DNA of 64,000 nt, from the NCBI GenBank assembly GCA_002104945.1, contig MCFH01000013.1, positions 868,001 to 932,000 of the forward strand. The letters are read 5' to 3'. The notes beneath the pieces are model-generated. The model saw only the letters and a list, made by a program, of their open reading frames with translations. It ran no database searches and was not told the origin of the DNA. Positions 11,745 through 58,496 of the stretch are shown here, piece after piece; positions within the stretch are counted from its first letter, which is position 1, and each line of letters begins with the position of its first letter. This stretch comes from Piromyces finnis finn. Lineage: Eukaryota; Fungi; Neocallimastigomycota. The translations under genes and the position numbers were made by a program.

Positions 11745-12375
11745 GCACTTTATTAACATTAATATTTTCAAATAAAATATTTATGAAATAATAAAAAATT
11801 ATTTAAAAAACAAATAAAATGTGTTTTTTTTATTATTTTGGGTATATATGCAAAACAGATTATATGTGAATTAAATGAAGGAAGCTGAAAGAGTAAAAGA
11901 TGAACGTTTATAAGGAAAAGCGAAAAGGAGTTTGGTGTATCAAAATATGGAAATTTATATATGTATTTAAAGGTTGAATATATTTATAAATAAATAAAAT
12001 ATAAAGAAAATGATATTTTCAAGGTTTGTAAAATAAAGTAGTAATGTCATGTTTTAAGAAATGATAAGTAATATTGTTGTAAAAGTATAAAATTGTTATT
12101 TATAAGGTATAAAGGTATAAATGATTTCAAAAATCATGTGTAGAAGATATGAAAAAATTATAAGTGTACAATTATAACGTTTGTAAATTACTAGATAGTT
12201 TAATTTAATAAGAAGTTAATAATAGTAGTTATACAATTATTAAGAAATAAAAAGAAATATTGTGTTTTGGATTGTTTTGGGGTAATATTAGAGAGGTTTT
12301 ATTGTGGTGGTGCATTTTATTATTTAATGAAATAGTACATATAAACCTTTAAATTAAATGAATATTAGAAAAGGT

Positions 12376-12387
12376 AAGTAGACAATA
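12376..12387 (+). repeat. Left target-site duplication AAGTAGACAATA
   Basis: The identical 12-mer occurs at 18082-18093, directly after the poly(A) tail. Confidence 0.9.
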
Positions 12388-12634
12388 CCCTCTTGGGAAC
12401 GTGCCTTCATTTATTTAATAAATGTAGTTTCTCAAGGGGGTCTACTCATGCTCATGGTACTGAGAGAGTAGAAAGAATTAAATCCAAGTATTGCGCAATG
12501 GATGCTTGGTGCCCTCTTAGGAATGTGCCTTCATTTATTTAATAAATGTAATTTCTCAAGGGGGTCTACTCATGCTCATGGTACTGAGAGAGTAGAAAGA
12601 ATTAAATCCAAGCATTGCGCAATGGATGCTTGGT
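12388..12634 (+). repeat. Two tandem 124-bp-period modules at the exact 5' end of the LINE, plus a partial third hairpin copy at 12665-12680
   Basis: 12388-12510 and 12512-12634 differ at only 4 positions. GCTCATGGTACTGAG recurs a third time at 12665. Confidence 0.95.
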
Positions 12635-13279
12635 TAGTCTTCAAGGGAAAATTATTAGGACTAAGCTCATGGTACTGAGCGATTAAAAAACATTTTATTC
12701 ATCAAATTTAAGTATTTGATGAATAAGTGAATGTTTGATTTTTCAGGTAAGTTTGTATAGTATTTAATTAGAAGAGTAATACATTTTGTTGCTGTATTTT
12801 TTCTTTTATTCATGTATTCATGTAGTACTACTCTTCTCTTGTAAGAATCCAATGTAGTCAACTTTAGCATTTGCATTGTACTTTTATATTCATGTAGCTA
12901 TTGTTGTATTGTTTCTTGTAAGAGACTGATTCACTCTACATCATGTAAAAATACTATTCACAAGCTTTCTGGTGTCGACATTCTTGATTCAAATTTTTTA
13001 CCAATTTAAATATTTAATGAAAAGTAAAGTCAAACAAGTTTAGTGTCAAAAAGCGATTCGAATTTACTAACAACAAACCAAAACTAGAATTTTTAAAGAA
13101 AATTTACAACTAGAATTCAAAAAATAAGAAACTTTAAACAAAGCATCGTAACAATTTTTGTACTATCCAGTACTTTTAAGAAGAGAGAGAGAGACAGATT
13201 TTTTTCCATATACGTTATATTTGTAATTTTTATTAGTATTTATTTTATATTCAATATTTTTTAATTAGAATTTATTATC

Positions 13280-16200
13280 ATGTCAGTCCTTTATATTAAA
13301 GATAAGAATTATATCAGACGTGGTACCCGGTCTTATGGTATCCCCTTAGATGATATTCGCTCCTTCTTTATCCGTGGTATTCGATCATGGTCAGTAAATA
13401 TGCTATGGGAAAAACTCGAGGTTATTCTAGAAGATAAATTTAATTCAGTTATTAGTGTTAAATATTTTCAAACTTTCAATGATCACTTTTTCTTAGTCAA
13501 GGTTCATGGTTCATCAAAAGATTGTATTAAAATCTTACACATGTTAAAGAAGAAACTTTCAGTTACCTCAATTTCCTTTTCAGCTCGTAGTAGAAGGAAT
13601 CACAAATACACTTTTTCCACTCTCAAACGTAAAATTTTAGTTTCTAATAAACATCAACATTCTATTCAACAATCATTTCAACAATCAGTTCAACAATCAG
13701 TTCAACAATCTCATCAACAATCCGATCTTCAACGAGATCTTCAACAGGATCTTCAACAAGTTTCCCATCATGAAAATATTCCAGATCTACAGCAAACACA
13801 ATTTCAATCTCAACATTCAACAATTAATTCTAATAGTTCTATCAACTCTGATAACAGTTCAATAGTTGATAGTTCTTCAGTTTCACAGCCATCTAGTAAT
13901 AGTTCTACTTATTCCTCTGATGCATCATCCATTAATAACGATGACTTTAATAATAATAATAATAGCAACGATTCTTCCTCATCCAACAAGCCTGATAACT
14001 TTTCTTTTTGTCTTAGTTGGAACACCAATGGGTGGAATCATGAAAAGAGAGATAGTATTAGCTATTTCACAGCTATTTTCAAACCATTATTCTTATGTTT
14101 CCAAGAAACTGGTAATGGTTCTGGATCGAATACAGATTATCCTTGTCGTGTTACTTTGCGAAACTATAGACACTTTTTCAAGAAAGCTGACGAATCAGTT
14201 CCGGGAATGAGAGGTTTATATTTAGGTTTTCACAATTCGTGTCAAGCCTCACTTGAAAACTTCTCTGGAAAGTATATTATTTCTATTTATACTTTTAGTC
14301 TCTGGAATAGATTCAAATGCTCGATTGGAAATGTTTATATGCCTCATAGTCATCACAACATCTATGTTGATCATGCAAAGTTAGAAGTTCGCTTGTGGTT
14401 ACAAACTCATTCATCCCATCCATCGATTCTTGTTGGTGATTTTAATATGTCTAAAGTAAAATTATCCAACTGGTTATCAACTAATGGATTAGGAGATTGG
14501 GAAATTCTTCCGCTTAGAGGGTCTACTATCTCTTGGACTCGAGGTGAACAATCTTCCGACATTGACCATGCTCTTATCAATTCGAAGATGAAAGATCTTA
14601 TTCACTCAGGATCATTTATAAATAATTTTTATCCTGTATCAGACCATAAGCCACTTCTTATTAATGGTAAAATTATTCCTATGGAAGATTTTTCTAATGA
14701 CTTTAACGTTCCTAAGAAAATTCTGAAATGGAATAGATTAAAATGTATTGAGGAAAAGGAATCTATTCTCAGTCATAATAAATTCCAAATACTTTCAGCA
14801 AAATTCAACGATCCTAATGTTTCTACAGATGATCTTTCCAAAGAATTTACTTCAACTGCTTTTTCAATTGCAGACGAGCTCAGTATTACCTCAGCAAATA
14901 ATGTTATAAAGTCTTCATTTCATATTTCACAACAAATTTTTAATCTCCAAAAAATCAAAATGAAGTTGTATAAGAGATTTAAAAAAGAAAGAATTTATGA
15001 TATAGATGAATTTATTAAAAGAATTAAAATCTACCGTAAGCTCATTGATTACATCCACAAAAGATGTAATGAATTTAGGAAACAAGAATATCTTCATTGG
15101 ATTAAAACAGGATGTGAGTATATGAAGAGTCATAATCCTAAGAAGGCCTGGAAATGGATCAAGAAAACTGCAAAAATTGGAAAAGATTCTTTCTTTATTG
15201 CTCAACCAATTAAAAATAAAAATGGAGAGTTAGTTGTTGCTACGGAAGAACAACTAGATGTGTGGCATGATCATTTCGAAAATCTTGCATCAGATCCAAG
15301 TGGCGTAAGTCTTGATTTGGAGCATTGGTATGAAGAACCAACGAATAAACGTTTTTCACTCCCTATGCTTGATGAATGGGATATCAACCAAGATATTAGT
15401 ATTGATGAAGTCAAGTCAGCTATCCTCTCTACTCCGAATTATAAAGCATCAGGTCCGGATGGTATTCCAATTGAATTTTACAAAGCATTAATTCCATCAA
15501 GTAATGATTCTAATAATGCTACAGATAATAATTCTTCCGGTAATACCACTTCAGATAATGATTCTTATGGTTTAAATTTTATTCTTAAATTATACAACCG
15601 TATTTGGGATGGAGACTTCCCCAACTCATGGAATGAATCCAGTATTGTTTCTATTCCTAAGAAGGGAGATTTGACAGATTGTGATAACTATCGAGGTATA
15701 TCACTTATCAATAATGGTATTAAGTTGATTTCCAAAATTGTCACCACTAGAATCTCAGAATATGGTCTAAAGAATAATTTCATTAGACCTGAACAATTTG
15801 GTTTTCGAAAAAAGGAAGAAAGTATCAGTCTTTTCATTTCAATCCAAGAAATATGCCGTAGACGTCAATTAGATAATAAAGAGACATATTTGGCCTTTTT
15901 AGATCTCAGGAAAGCATACGATTCAGTCCCAATCGGTAATATTCTCCATAAATTAGATTGTTTAGGAATCCGAGGTAAGAGTTTACAATTCATCAAAAAT
16001 TTATATTTAACATCTAAGGCTAATGTCAAATTAGATGGACAATTCTCGAAATCTTTTGATGTGAAGAAAGGAGTCCGTCAAGGATGCCCTCTTTCTCCTA
16101 TTCTCTTTAATCTCTTTATTAATGATATATTTAAAGAGTGTGAAGATCTCGGAGTCAGTTTAGGTGACACTCGATGCTGTGGTGGACTTTTTGCAGATGA

Positions 16201-17806
16201 TATAGTTATTTGTGCTCCAACAAGAGGATGCTTAAAAAAGATGCTTAGAAGAGTTAATGAATGGGCCTTGTATAATGAAATGGAATTTGGTATCCAGAAA
16301 TGTTCAACGATGGTGATTCGTCCTGAATCAATAGAAAATCAGAACAAGAGAGATCCAACATTTTACTTAGCAGGACAACCCATTCCAACTACTGATTGTT
16401 ATACTTATCTTGGTGTTCCATTTGATAAGAATCTGTCCCTTAAACCAGTTATTAAAGCTCTTAATAACAAGGTTTTGAAAGGACTTTTCTCAGTCAGTAA
16501 ATTCTTAAGAAATCCTAATATTCCTATTCCCTTCAAAAAGCTAGTACTTAACTCACAAGTGATTAGCAGAGTTTCATACTTTGCACCATTACTTGGATCC
16601 AACAAAGCCAGGTCTAGGATTGCACAGAAGCATGTTAACAAAGGAATACGATGGGTTGCCGGAGTTCATAAAGCTGTATCGTTTATATCTTTATACTCTA
16701 TCTCAAAAGATTTGAATATTCCTCCATTGTCAGCCAAATGTGCATTAGCTCAGGTTAGATGTTTTAACAAATGGAAAAACTCAAATTGTATTATCTCACA
16801 CCTTGTCAATTACATTCCTAAATTTAGAAAATACACGTGGTGCAAATCAAGTAGGACACTTGATAAAAAACTAAAGAAACATGGAGATGTTAAAGCAGTT
16901 AAAAACTTTTATTGGAAAGATCTCAAAGGGAATTCAATCAAAGCGCAATATTATGATGATAATAAGTTTATTGATACTAAAGATTTTATTAAATTATGTT
17001 ATGAGTACCCAGAGTTTGCCTATGGCTTCTACTGGCTATTGAAAGCAAGAAGCGGATACAAGTTGGATGCTAGAGTTGCCAAAGCTGCCAAATTTGTTGA
17101 TCCAGTTTGTCCTAACTACTGTCCATGTTGCAAGTGTGGAGATCAAAGTATTAAACATTGGTTATTAGATTGTCCAACATTTAGAGATATCCGTATTAAA
17201 CATTATGATTCCATAGTCCAGCTATTAAATTTTTTCAGTCAACGTAATTCCAATAGTCCTATCAATAATAATGAAATTGATAATATCAGTAGAGATAGTA
17301 ATAATATTAATAGTAATAGTAACAATAGTAATAATAACAATAGTAATAGTAACAATAGTAATAATAACAATAGTAGTAATAGAAATAATAATATTAGTAA
17401 TGATAGCAATAGTGAAGATAATAATTCTAATTTAGATAGTAATTTAGTTAATGATAGTAATAGTTCTAATAATCCGGTGAATATTAATGTGTATGATTAT
17501 TCTAGTGTGTGCAGTAAAATATTTAAATTCCTTCTTGGGGGAAGAAGTTTTAACAATATTAATTACAATTCAAGGGAATGGAAAGAACTTTGTAAGCGTC
17601 AGATTCAATCTGGTACTAACGAAGGAACACCATTCTTGACGGTAACCGCGGAACTTCTAACCAAAATCATGCCTTTTGCTATTGGCCAGCAATGGTCAAT
17701 GTTCAAAAGGTTTGAAGCAACATCCAAGAGCGTCAATGCTGAAGAAACAGTAAGACAGGCCAGGAGGGCCAGCGCAACCAATGGAGATCATAATTTTGTC
17801 CCATGA
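13280..17806 (+). CDS. LINE polyprotein: N-terminal RRM-like region, apurinic-type endonuclease, reverse transcriptase, C-terminal CCHC knuckle
   Basis: APE motifs SWNTNG, FQET, VGDFN, DIDH, SDH. RT motifs YRGISL, FLDLRKAYDSV, QGCPLSP, FADD, YLG. C-X2-C-X8-H-X4-C (CPCCKCGDQSIKHWLLDC). No stops or frameshifts. Confidence 0.95.
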   Translation: MSVLYIKDKNYIRRGTRSYGIPLDDIRSFFIRGIRSWSVNMLWEKLEVILEDKFNSVISVKYFQTFNDHFFLVKVHGSSKDCIKILHMLKKKLSVTSISFSARSRRNHKYTFSTLKRKILVSNKHQHSIQQSFQQSVQQSVQQSHQQSDLQRDLQQDLQQVSHHENIPDLQQTQFQSQHSTINSNSSINSDNSSIVDSSSVSQPSSNSSTYSSDASSINNDDFNNNNNSNDSSSSNKPDNFSFCLSWNTNGWNHEKRDSISYFTAIFKPLFLCFQETGNGSGSNTDYPCRVTLRNYRHFFKKADESVPGMRGLYLGFHNSCQASLENFSGKYIISIYTFSLWNRFKCSIGNVYMPHSHHNIYVDHAKLEVRLWLQTHSSHPSILVGDFNMSKVKLSNWLSTNGLGDWEILPLRGSTISWTRGEQSSDIDHALINSKMKDLIHSGSFINNFYPVSDHKPLLINGKIIPMEDFSNDFNVPKKILKWNRLKCIEEKESILSHNKFQILSAKFNDPNVSTDDLSKEFTSTAFSIADELSITSANNVIKSSFHISQQIFNLQKIKMKLYKRFKKERIYDIDEFIKRIKIYRKLIDYIHKRCNEFRKQEYLHWIKTGCEYMKSHNPKKAWKWIKKTAKIGKDSFFIAQPIKNKNGELVVATEEQLDVWHDHFENLASDPSGVSLDLEHWYEEPTNKRFSLPMLDEWDINQDISIDEVKSAILSTPNYKASGPDGIPIEFYKALIPSSNDSNNATDNNSSGNTTSDNDSYGLNFILKLYNRIWDGDFPNSWNESSIVSIPKKGDLTDCDNYRGISLINNGIKLISKIVTTRISEYGLKNNFIRPEQFGFRKKEESISLFISIQEICRRRQLDNKETYLAFLDLRKAYDSVPIGNILHKLDCLGIRGKSLQFIKNLYLTSKANVKLDGQFSKSFDVKKGVRQGCPLSPILFNLFINDIFKECEDLGVSLGDTRCCGGLFADDIVICAPTRGCLKKMLRRVNEWALYNEMEFGIQKCSTMVIRPESIENQNKRDPTFYLAGQPIPTTDCYTYLGVPFDKNLSLKPVIKALNNKVLKGLFSVSKFLRNPNIPIPFKKLVLNSQVISRVSYFAPLLGSNKARSRIAQKHVNKGIRWVAGVHKAVSFISLYSISKDLNIPPLSAKCALAQVRCFNKWKNSNCIISHLVNYIPKFRKYTWCKSSRTLDKKLKKHGDVKAVKNFYWKDLKGNSIKAQYYDDNKFIDTKDFIKLCYEYPEFAYGFYWLLKARSGYKLDARVAKAAKFVDPVCPNYCPCCKCGDQSIKHWLLDCPTFRDIRIKHYDSIVQLLNFFSQRNSNSPINNNEIDNISRDSNNINSNSNNSNNNNSNSNNSNNNNSSNRNNNISNDSNSEDNNSNLDSNLVNDSNSSNNPVNINVYDYSSVCSKIFKFLLGGRSFNNINYNSREWKELCKRQIQSGTNEGTPFLTVTAELLTKIMPFAIGQQWSMFKRFEATSKSVNAEETVRQARRASATNGDHNFVP

Positions 17807-18042
17807 TAAAATTTTGATCTTTGGCTCGGTGTCCCATTGGAAGTCAAATACAATTATTATACTTTAGTATGATAGTGGCTTTCTTACTTTAATTAAAATT
17901 ACTAGAATACATTATACCCAATTTTTATTCATTTGTGTTTATTTAAACATATTTTTTTTTATTTTTATTTTATTTTAATTTTTATATTACATGTATTATA
18001 ATTTTAATTAAATTAATAATAAAGTTTAAAATATTTGATGCC

Positions 18043-18045
<3 letters not shown>

Positions 18046-18083
<38 letters not shown>
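18046..18083 (+). repeat. Poly(A) tail of the retrotransposon (38 A; the last 2 may belong to the TSD)
   Basis: Uninterrupted A-run downstream of AATAAA and immediately before the right TSD copy. Confidence 0.9.
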
Positions 18084-18086
<3 letters not shown>

Positions 18087-18093
18087 GACAATA
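18082..18093 (+). repeat. Right target-site duplication AAGTAGACAATA
   Basis: Matches 12376-12387. Confidence 0.9.
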
Positions 18094-57227: not shown

Positions 57228-58496
57228 TTTTTTTTTTTTTTACTTTTATTTAATTCGAAATCCGTTTTAATACATTTAATAATAATACAATAATTATTAA
57301 CACTATTATCTTTTATCTATTTTATTTTCTATCTCTATAAATTCCTTTTTTTATTTTTTGAAAAAAAAAAAAAAAGGAATAAAGTATATCAAACACCACA
57401 ACCTTTTAAATATTATTGTGTAATTGATTATGAAGCAACATGTGTAGAAGGTGGTGGCCTTGATTATCCAAATGAAATTATTGAATTTCCAGCAGTTTTA
57501 GTTAGAAGTTGGACAAATACCGTTGTATGTATTTTAAAGAATTACAAAAATAATTTTTTTTTACTCACTATTTATTTTTAACTTTAATGTATTAATCACC
57601 ACCATCTCTCTTTTTTTTTTTTTTTTTTTAATTAAAATTTAAAAATATTAAAAAGGAAGATGAATTTCATGAATATGTTAAACCAATAAACGAACCCATA
57701 TTAACACAATATTGTAAAGATTTAACGGGAATAACACAAGTATGTATATCTATTATCTAATTGAATTGTAGTTTTAATTTGAAATTTCTCAAACCATATT
57801 ATTATTATTTGTTTTATATTAAATCATTTTATTTATTTTATACTCTATATATTTTTATATTATATTATACTATTACTATTACTATTACTATTACTATTAC
57901 TATTACTATTACTATTACTATTACTATTACTATTACTATTATTATTACTATTACTATTACTATTACTATTACTATTACTATTACTATTACTATTACTATT
58001 ACTATTACTATTACTATTACTATTACCGATTACTATTTTATTTTTTATTTTATTTTATTTATTTATTTATTTTTTTTTTTTGAAATTATCCTAGGAACAA
58101 GTAGATAAAGCAGACTATTTCCCAAAAGTATTAGAAAAATTTGAAAAATGGTTAAATTTATATTCAGAGTTTCCATATCAAAATGTATGTTTTGTTACCG
58201 ATGGACCATGGGATATTCGTGACTTTATTCGTAAACAATGTATAATATCTCAGATAGAAAGACCCGTCTACTTTTATAAATGGAATAATTTACGAAAGAC
58301 ATTTAAATATTTTTATAAGCTAAGTAATCAAAAACGTCTTAATGAGATGTTAGAATATCTAGGTATGACTTTTGAAGGTCATGAACATTGTGGATTAGAT
58401 GATACCCGTAATATAACAAGAATCGTTCAACGAATGTTGGATTCAAAATGTTTTTTTAAATATAATATAGAATATCCTTTATCAAAAAAACAATAG
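56847..58496 (+). CDS. ERI1-family 3'-5' exoribonuclease (SAP domain + DEDDh); 4 exons
   Basis: SAP: VTELRKEMSRLGLSLKGNKDELKKR. Nuclease: VIDYEATC, EIIEFPAV, FHEYVKP, LTGITQ|EQVDKA, VTDGPWDI, FEGHEHCGLDDTRNI. Introns about 57149-57376, 57524-57656 and 57740-58094. Confidence 0.92.
57869..58026. repeat. (ACTATT)n hexanucleotide microsatellite in the exonuclease intron
   Basis: Direct reading; it explains the spurious poly-(IT) ORF. Confidence 0.95.

Follow-up and report, generated by a model that had tools for sequence, protein, structure and literature searches.

A candidate cis-acting RNA head at the 5' end of an L1-like retrotransposon clade of anaerobic gut fungi

The DNA analyzed here, which we call the window, is a stretch of 64,000 nucleotides from the anaerobic gut fungus Piromyces finnis (GenBank assembly GCA_002104945.1, contig MCFH01000013.1, positions 868,001 to 932,000 of the forward strand). 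At window positions 12388-18083, on the + strand, it holds a full-length non-LTR (non-long terminal repeat) retrotransposon, a poly(A)-tailed long interspersed nuclear element (LINE), whose 5' end consists of tandem copies of a 124-nt unit. Comparison with related elements suggests that this unit is the portable head of an L1-like LINE clade in anaerobic gut fungi. We lean, with limited confidence, towards the interpretation that the head acts in cis as RNA, probably serves as a promoter as well, and forms arrays by template switching.

The element and its tandem head

The limits of the element are well defined. The 10-mer GTAGACAATA, read directly at 12378-12387 (+), recurs in identical form at 18084-18093 (+), where it immediately follows a pure poly(A) tail of 38 nt (18046-18083, +). 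These two copies form the target-site duplication, and the first nucleotide of the LINE, position 12388, adjoins the 5' copy without a gap. Between head and tail lies a single open reading frame (ORF) of 1508 amino acids (13280-17806, +) that encodes, in order, an N-terminal domain, an apurinic/apyrimidinic (AP) endonuclease, a reverse transcriptase and a Cys/His knuckle. The endonuclease region matches Exo_endo_phos (E 1.3e-6, above the curated cutoff) and the reverse transcriptase region matches RVT_1 (E 1e-35); the closest solved structure is human L1 ORF2p (E 9e-33). An ORF with AP endonuclease and reverse transcriptase, a poly(A) tail and a target-site duplication of variable sequence together place 12388-18083 in the L1 superfamily. 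The surrounding genome is very AT-rich, with an intergenic GC content of 10-20%. No tRNA gene lies in the window, and on that ground we rejected targeting of tRNA genes as in the TRE elements of Dictyostelium.

Protein relatives of the ORF were found in gut and rumen metagenome assemblies at 43-63% identity, one of them (P0023) from Orpinomyces, and no relative above 63% identity turned up in the protein database. The DNA itself is also present in metagenome runs from animal guts. A scan of metagenome data yielded only six loci, scans of genome_contigs and viral_contigs yielded none, and no copy of the same family was obtained. For comparisons of the head we used those related contigs that reach the 5' end of their element (L001-L006, L013, L015, L017 and L019), L007-L009 having no 5' end and being unusable for this purpose.

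Tandem Repeats Finder reports a repeat at 12388-12634 with a period of 124, 2.0 copies and 96% matches. Monomer 1 (12388-12511, +) comprises the predicted hairpins H1 (12388-12440), H2 (12441-12472) and H3 (12484-12509) and ends in the junction letter G12511; monomer 2 (12512-12635, +) comprises H1 (12512-12564), H2 (12565-12596) and H3 (12608-12633) and ends in T12635. H1 closes the very 5' end, H2 carries the loop UGGUAC and H3 the loop GCGCAAUG. As sense RNA, the three hairpins of each monomer have predicted energies of -43.4 kcal/mol (monomer 1) and -39.8 kcal/mol (monomer 2) in RNAfold, with z-scores of -4.7 and -4.0, and none of 200 shuffled sequences was as stable. The antisense strands of the two monomers fold worse, at -29.0 and -32.4 kcal/mol. 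The head is also a GC-richer island, with 39-41% GC in a flank of 17-22%.

Behind the two monomers, at 12636-12759 (+), lies a degenerate partial third monomer, or 'tether', recognized by an alignment (A1), by three 15-mer matches and by a covariance model, R1, that was built from the two monomers of the window alone. R1 scores monomer 1 at 154.7 bits and monomer 2 at 156.5 bits, and matches the tether at 12637-12724 (E 0.0047). The tether is older and AT-eroded, and begins at about unit position 39. It retains the inner hairpin of H2, the 15-mer GCTCATGGTACTGAG, at 12665-12679; this 15-mer starts at 12450, 12574 and 12665, three occurrences where 0.01 would be expected by chance. An earlier examination of the DNA, made by a model that ran no database searches (the sequence-only reading), had started the LINE right after the target-site duplication at 12388, with two modules of 124-bp period and three hairpins each and a third copy of the H2 loop hairpin near 12665. 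All of this is borne out by the 10-mers on both sides of the element, by Tandem Repeats Finder and RNAfold, and by the exact match to GCTCATGGTACTGAG.

Conservation of the head fold

Covariation between the two monomers of the window is no more than chance would give, and the support for the structure comes from other lineages. The sequence-only reading had counted four differences between the copies, had found that all four preserve pairing, and had offered them as covariation. We count five differences, at unit positions 8 (G/A), 13 (C/T), 40 (G/A) and 102 (T/C) and at the junction letter 124 (G/T), and preservation of pairing does not hold for all of them. C12400 and G12427 (unit C13 and G40), presented as one side of a compensatory exchange, are unpaired in the minimum-energy fold of monomer 1 and pair only in a register shifted by one. 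This is the register adopted by monomer 2, which uses it because G8A breaks the pair G8:C46. With this substitution (G12395A) a G:C pair is lost from the best fold, and the predicted energy of monomer 2 is 3.6 kcal/mol less favorable. When random sets of four transitions were placed on monomer 1, 45% of the sets left the fold as good as that of monomer 2. The probability that all four transitions keep pairing was 0.27, and the probability that two of four sites are partners was 0.03, for a register picked after the fact. The argument from four sites therefore fails statistically, and the warning that accompanied it, that the covariation could be chance, was well placed.

Read evidence points the same way. 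It consists of assembled contigs (Logan) from the same organism, 2772 of which were placed on 11900-13700. In DNA run X1, A12551 makes up >99% of the depth at its position, and the monomer differences therefore look inherited from one master. They represent at most one evolutionary event, and not repeated evidence.

In each of the related lineages, the element opens with a GC-richer head whose first letters are CCC(C/U). The boundary of the head is set by several independent flanks (in L003/L004/L013 and in L002/L017) and by the unit boundary in L006. In five lineages the first 8-12 nt (CCCY...) can pair with ...RGGG 25-100 nt downstream to form H1, and the letters that follow CCCY differ between lineages while the pairing is kept. 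Compared with shuffled sequences, the energy of this duplex gives p = 0.002 in the window, 0.077 in L001, 0.03 in L002/L017, <0.001 in L003/L004 and <0.001 in L005/L006. Directly behind H1, the window, L001, L002 and L017 fold a second hairpin, H2, with a UGGURC motif at the loop; as folded, the loops read GUGCGG in L002 and GUACGG in L017. An extra hairpin with the loop CAGUAC is present in L001, L003 and L004.

Compensatory changes were counted in H3, which occurs in the window, in L002/L017 and in L019, always with the invariant loop GCGCAAUG. In the H3 alignment 91% of the cells are paired, and both sides have changed in seven of the nine stem pairs. Its covariation of 0.82 compares with 0.39 for shuffles, none of 500 of which reaches it, and with at most 0.29 for slid partners. 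Formal pair counts were confined to this hairpin because the MAFFT alignment of whole heads across lineages was structurally inconsistent. All ten modules compared contain G.U pairs and fold more stably as sense than as antisense RNA, by 3-15 kcal/mol.

The covariance model R1, run unfiltered over 60.8 kb of related loci, matches their 5' ends on the + strand in L017 (E 0.01), L019 (0.017), L002 (0.05) and L001 (1.4), with weaker + strand matches at the 5' ends of L005, L004, L013 and L003 (E 3-5). The outgroup L020, which has 28% identity and whose genome of origin is not AT-rich, gave no match at its 5' end. The usual marks of a conserved structured RNA are thus found as compensatory changes in H3 and as duplex energy in five lineages for H1. 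Together with the absence of an Rfam match in the window and in eight relatives, these comparisons lead us to regard the fold as real, as under selection in the sense RNA and as outside any described family. The proposal that a selected RNA structure marks the exact 5' end of the element, made from one locus, gains from the relatives the evidence of H1, H3, strand and R1 that the two window copies could not supply.

A pseudoknot between a hairpin loop and the interior of H1 was also considered. The letters are compatible (GGUAC with GUGCC in the window, with variants in L001, L003, L004, L002 and L017), and p ranges from 0.11 to 0.98 per lineage. The pairing reaches significance in no lineage, and we retain it as a mere idea. 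Within the family itself, the window copy has the minority letter at the polymorphic positions 12642, 12704, 12881 and 13057 (DNA run).

Arrays, head transfer and the remainder of the element

The family to which the window copy belongs is very high-copy and young, and has a sharp 5' boundary. Summed DNA depth, at most about 1e3 in the flank, leaps to 6.5e5 at 12388, most contigs are >95% like the window, and contigs from other loci have their own flanks joined at 12388 or 12389. Unit number varies between copies: one contig from an RNA run (X7), which derives from another locus, begins exactly at 12512 and represents a copy with a single monomer.

Joints that lead back to the start of the element were recovered in DNA run X1. 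Seven of them return to 12388, from 12418 (twice), 12455, 12476, 12515, 12590 and 12667, each with one extra letter (G, C, T, T, T, C and T, in that order). The eighth joint, from 12579, returns to 12387 across 14 intervening letters. Of the approximately 1310 element positions covered, only the first 280 give rise to joints, an outcome that random nested insertions would give with p of about 4e-6. The monomer junction of the window has the same form (123 nt, a G, then nt 1), and the junction to the old third unit consists of 123 nt followed by a T. Addition of an untemplated letter, followed by copying of a second RNA, is established for the reverse transcriptases of R2 and of group II introns. 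The one-letter joints back to nt 1 suggest that the arrays probably grow in this manner, by template switching of the reverse transcriptase at the RNA 5' end.

The arrays have the features of mouse-L1-type monomers, with head-to-tail 5' units in variable number followed by a degenerate unit, and tandem growth of the head is, as far as the related sequences tell, recurrent across lineages. L006 has tandem heads of about 117 nt at 1-172, the contig beginning inside the preceding unit, and L005 has an internal duplication inside H1 (37-200).

In the window's own family, most of the DNA depth comes from the dimer and carries its specific differences. The head is present in RNA-run contigs, and in three of these runs no depth at all falls on the single-copy flank. 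The internal junction is spanned by a contig from run X5 (record 9, 12459-12548, 0 mismatches, depth 1951) and by one from run X6 (record 17, 12459-12545, 1 mismatch, depth 1050), with depths like those of their neighbors. From this we infer that the two-monomer form is transcribed and has been copied many times; it looks inherited.

Heads also appear to have changed partners. Those of L002 (352-462) and L017 (145-256) share 96% identity across about 100 nt, a likeness that ends a few letters past H3; between their ORFs identity is only 43%, and the remaining untranslated regions (UTRs) do not align. Between the window and L019, the ORFs are 44% identical and H3 is 86-90% identical. Heads 96% identical on ORFs 43% identical imply movement between deeply diverged LINE lineages, and the L002/L017 head indicates that one such transfer was recent. 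In L015 (365-735), a head of the L003 type, starting CCTCTAGC, is nested in the C-terminal coding region of another LINE copy.

The head is followed by a long and unusual leader. The 5' UTR as a whole measures 892 nt (12388-13279) and contains 20 upstream ATGs, and cap-dependent scanning to 13280 is therefore unlikely. Outside the head, its best-conserved part is a UGUA-rich block at 12800-12960 (+), recognized by its TGTA count and by BLASTN to relatives. It has nine TGTA in 161 nt, a count that none of 5000 shuffles reaches, and ends in GAGNNTGATTCACTC, a motif common to all related lineages. BLASTN places it, at 68-89% identity, in L001 (373-507), L003 (443-560), L004 (304-460), L005 (389-450), L006 (343-377) and L002 (610-715). 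The block could provide sites for RNA-binding proteins, or could be a promoter or translation element. With its upstream ATGs and its UGUA block, the 5' UTR does not look like a scanned leader.

Further downstream, a candidate GT..AG intron of 77 nt (13160-13236, +) is skipped exactly by one contig of DNA run X1, which looks like a retro-copied spliced variant that lost a small 5'-UTR intron. From 12583 as far as 13160, contigs of the RNA runs follow the DNA colinearly, and most RNA there is therefore unspliced.

The N-terminal domain of the ORF (residues 1-125, 13280-13654) is kept in all related LINEs (alignment A2). AlphaFold predicts a beta-alpha-beta-beta-alpha-beta arrangement (pLDDT 75), a topology like that of RNA recognition motifs or ferredoxins. 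No Pfam family covers the domain, and its matches in the PDB are generic ferredoxin-like folds only, with TM-scores of about 0.4-0.5 by model length. On the predicted model, the domain may be an ORF1-like RNA-binding domain fused to an ORF2-like part. To call it RNA-binding outright is not warranted by such generic matches. Near the C-terminus, an Asn/Ser-rich tract of AAT/AGT repeats (17280-17413) is 76% like a repeat tract at 57869-58037 of the window, a likeness that reflects the general poly-Asn bias of the host.

Function of the head and comparison with known systems

How might such a head work? We propose that its RNA fold would act in cis, shielding the intact 5' end and marking it for the element's own protein, and that only complete RNAs would, through this mark, be copied to the end. 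The DNA of the head would probably also carry an internal promoter that starts at nt 1, as do L1Tc Pr77 and the mouse L1 monomers. At the RNA 5' end, the reverse transcriptase would add one untemplated letter and go on to copy the 5' portion of another LINE RNA, thereby prepending a head or a piece of one. G12511 and T12635 may be such junction letters. It is possible that the same template switching also grafts the head onto a different LINE lineage.

Several points weigh against this proposal. Promoter activity, protein binding and protection of the 5' end are what we infer by analogy with other elements. Each helix is backed by only three to five independent lineages, H1 and H2 can be aligned between lineages in more than one way, and a polymorphism at 12431 (C>A, about 15% of the depth in a DNA run) breaks a pair of H1. 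The sequence shared by L002 and L017 starts 5 to 8 nt before H1, so that the stem may not always include nt 1. The joints could partly be nested insertions, although their limitation to the first 280 nt argues otherwise, and the exact 124-nt period seen in several copies could also come from unequal crossing-over. Finally, contig depth does not measure copy number, and with a repeat this abundant some DNA may have been carried over into the runs labeled 'RNA?'.

Of the other explanations, the one that survives best, unlikely though we consider it, is that the units work purely at the DNA level, as promoter monomers like those of mouse L1, and that the hairpins are side effects of palindromic transcription-factor sites. 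In H3 of the window, ATTGCGCAAT is a perfect C/EBP-type bZIP palindrome. The 5' tandem array followed by a degenerate tether before the ORF recalls the mouse L1 monomers and tether described in PMC9022269, and the GC-richer island in its AT-rich flank, the variable unit number, with a single-monomer copy from 12512, and the swapping of heads between lineages, as L1 5' UTRs are swapped, all fit. Transcription-factor sites account less readily for stems of 8-12 bp around conserved loops that change on both sides yet stay complementary, or for G.U pairs that give the sense strand its advantage of 3-15 kcal/mol in 10 of 10 modules. The full palindrome, moreover, is found only in the window lineage, L002, L017 and L019 keeping just GCGCAATG.

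A bolder proposal, and to our minds a rather improbable one, makes the head a self-contained RNA device: either an undescribed class of ribozyme that is modulated in arrays, or a kissing-loop module for dimerization and template switching. The kissing-loop form, if true, would explain both array growth and head transfer through its GUAC and GCGC loop palindromes, and would amount to a retrovirus-like RNA dimer in a non-LTR element.

Taken separately, the notion that the hairpin loops are kissing-loop dimerization signals, like the dimerization initiation site of retroviruses, pairing LINE RNAs and promoting template switches, seems improbable. Its attraction lies in the self-complementary loop cores GUAC (in UGGUAC and CAGUAC) and GCGC (in the invariant GCGCAAUG), in a 10-nt palindrome of the window, AUUGCGCAAU, and in the frequency of template-switch-like joints and the head swap between lineages. 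The H2 loops of L001 (UGGUGC) and L002 (GUGCGG), however, are not palindromic, kisses of four base pairs are weak, and intramolecular pairing between the loop and the interior of H1 fits the same letters, though it is not itself significant.

Less probable again is a self-cleaving ribozyme in each unit, HDV-like (hepatitis delta virus-like) or of a new class, cutting directly 5' of CCCUC and thereby freeing the LINE RNA from read-through transcripts. The element starts with a C, and a C is an unusual start for RNA polymerase II. RNA-run contigs pass from foreign flanks into nt 1, and a long UTR with 20 upstream ATGs would suit an uncapped, non-scanned RNA. The exact 5' end, the GC-rich terminal stem and the three stem-loops are as drawn for L1TcRz (PMC3383444). 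Yet no Rfam ribozyme or other RNA family matches window positions 12000-13400 at E up to 10, or any of eight related loci at E up to 1; the models for the HDV-like clan, hammerhead, twister, twister-sister, pistol and hatchet were all without a match in the window and these relatives. A search of this kind had been called for by the sequence-only reading, and its outcome agrees with the failure there to fit known ribozyme cores. An HDV-like double pseudoknot, threaded manually onto the RNAfold fold in a hand check rather than an exhaustive descriptor search, did not fit: there is no 3-bp P3 adjoining the 3' strand of P1, since the letters CUC at 44-46 extend H1 and neither GAG nor GGG is available at L3 distance to pair with them, and there is no P2 partner after H2, where a complement of nt 8-21 is absent.

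The arrays themselves also speak against cleavage. A unit that cuts at its own 5' end would shed the units upstream of it, and arrays would therefore not be heritable through RNA. The window family nonetheless seems to have inherited its two-monomer array, and RNA-run contigs across the internal junction are abundant. In L1Tc, the role described for L1TcRz in tandem copies is to keep them individual (PMC3383444). A ribozyme cutting at each unit start is thus disfavored, while inefficient or context-dependent cleavage could still occur. Among the three functions first suggested for these modules, then, promoter monomer and ribonucleoprotein-assembly signal are still tenable by analogy, and it is the unrecognized ribozyme that has lost ground. 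A likeness of the H2 and H3 loops to the A-box of RNA polymerase III was considered separately and dropped, because a 5.7-kb AT-rich transcript is incompatible with this polymerase; no tRNA, 5S or SINE (short interspersed nuclear element) match was found.

That the head is a neutral by-product, its duplication owed to template switching and its hairpins to chance in a GC-richer stretch, is very improbable: the two window copies alone give no significant covariation and the family is young, with most contigs >95% like the window, but a cross-lineage fold with compensatory changes contradicts chance hairpins, and the head is kept at 96% where the ORFs are 43% identical.

The 5' ends of LINEs are their least understood part, with respect to how the first nucleotide is defined, how promoters are carried and how monomer arrays of the mouse type originate. 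The fungal clade bears on all three through its 124-nt head, with the conserved fold, the swaps and the one-letter junctions. Our literature search found no paper on the LINE 5' ends of anaerobic fungi. A compact cis element may also be of use in these gut fungi, which combine very high LINE loads with few genetic tools.

Among known systems, the cis-acting RNA head that we favor comes closest to L1Tc Pr77/L1TcRz, a 77-nt 5' hallmark that is both a promoter and an HDV-like ribozyme (PMC3383444). In both cases short 5' modules that start with C residues are common to several retroposon lineages, three stem-loops are present, the 5' end is occluded by a GC-rich first stem, and a dual reading as DNA promoter and RNA structure is possible (PMC3383444, PMC3185411). 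L1TcRz conforms to the HDV double pseudoknot, with cleavage at +1, whereas the fungal head, threaded by hand, does not fit that pseudoknot and has no Rfam match, and its apparently inherited tandem arrays argue against cleavage at each unit start.

R2 offers a second parallel. Its 5' RNA, with an HDV-like ribozyme and a protein-binding pseudoknot, is structured and acts in cis, as the fungal head may do. Its reverse transcriptase adds untemplated letters at the end of a template and then takes up a second RNA, with 5'-junction variation, as the contig joints suggest for the fungal enzyme. Unlike the fungal LINE, R2 is site-specific, has a restriction-like endonuclease and a single ribozyme, and lacks a monomer array.

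The A-module of Dictyostelium TRE5-A is a modular, sometimes duplicated promoter unit in the 5' UTR of a LINE from a very AT-rich genome, and TRE5-A targets tRNA genes. We know of no conserved RNA fold reported for it. The fungal head and the A-module are both modular 5' units in AT-rich genomes; they have no sequence relation, and the window contains no tRNA gene.

In layout, the fungal head also resembles the 5'-UTR monomers (A, Tf and Gf) and tether of mouse and rat L1. Here, too, head-to-tail 5' units belong to elements of the L1 superfamily, occur in variable number, are followed by a truncated or degenerate unit before the ORF, and go with recurrent new 5' ends. The fungal unit differs in having no sequence relation to these monomers, in its fungal host and in its length of 124 nt as compared with about 200 nt. 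It also has a conserved sense-RNA fold with compensatory changes, a trait by which the mouse monomers are not defined, and promoter activity would, by analogy, be added to it. If template switching holds for the fungal arrays, it would offer a testable origin for 5' monomer arrays in general.

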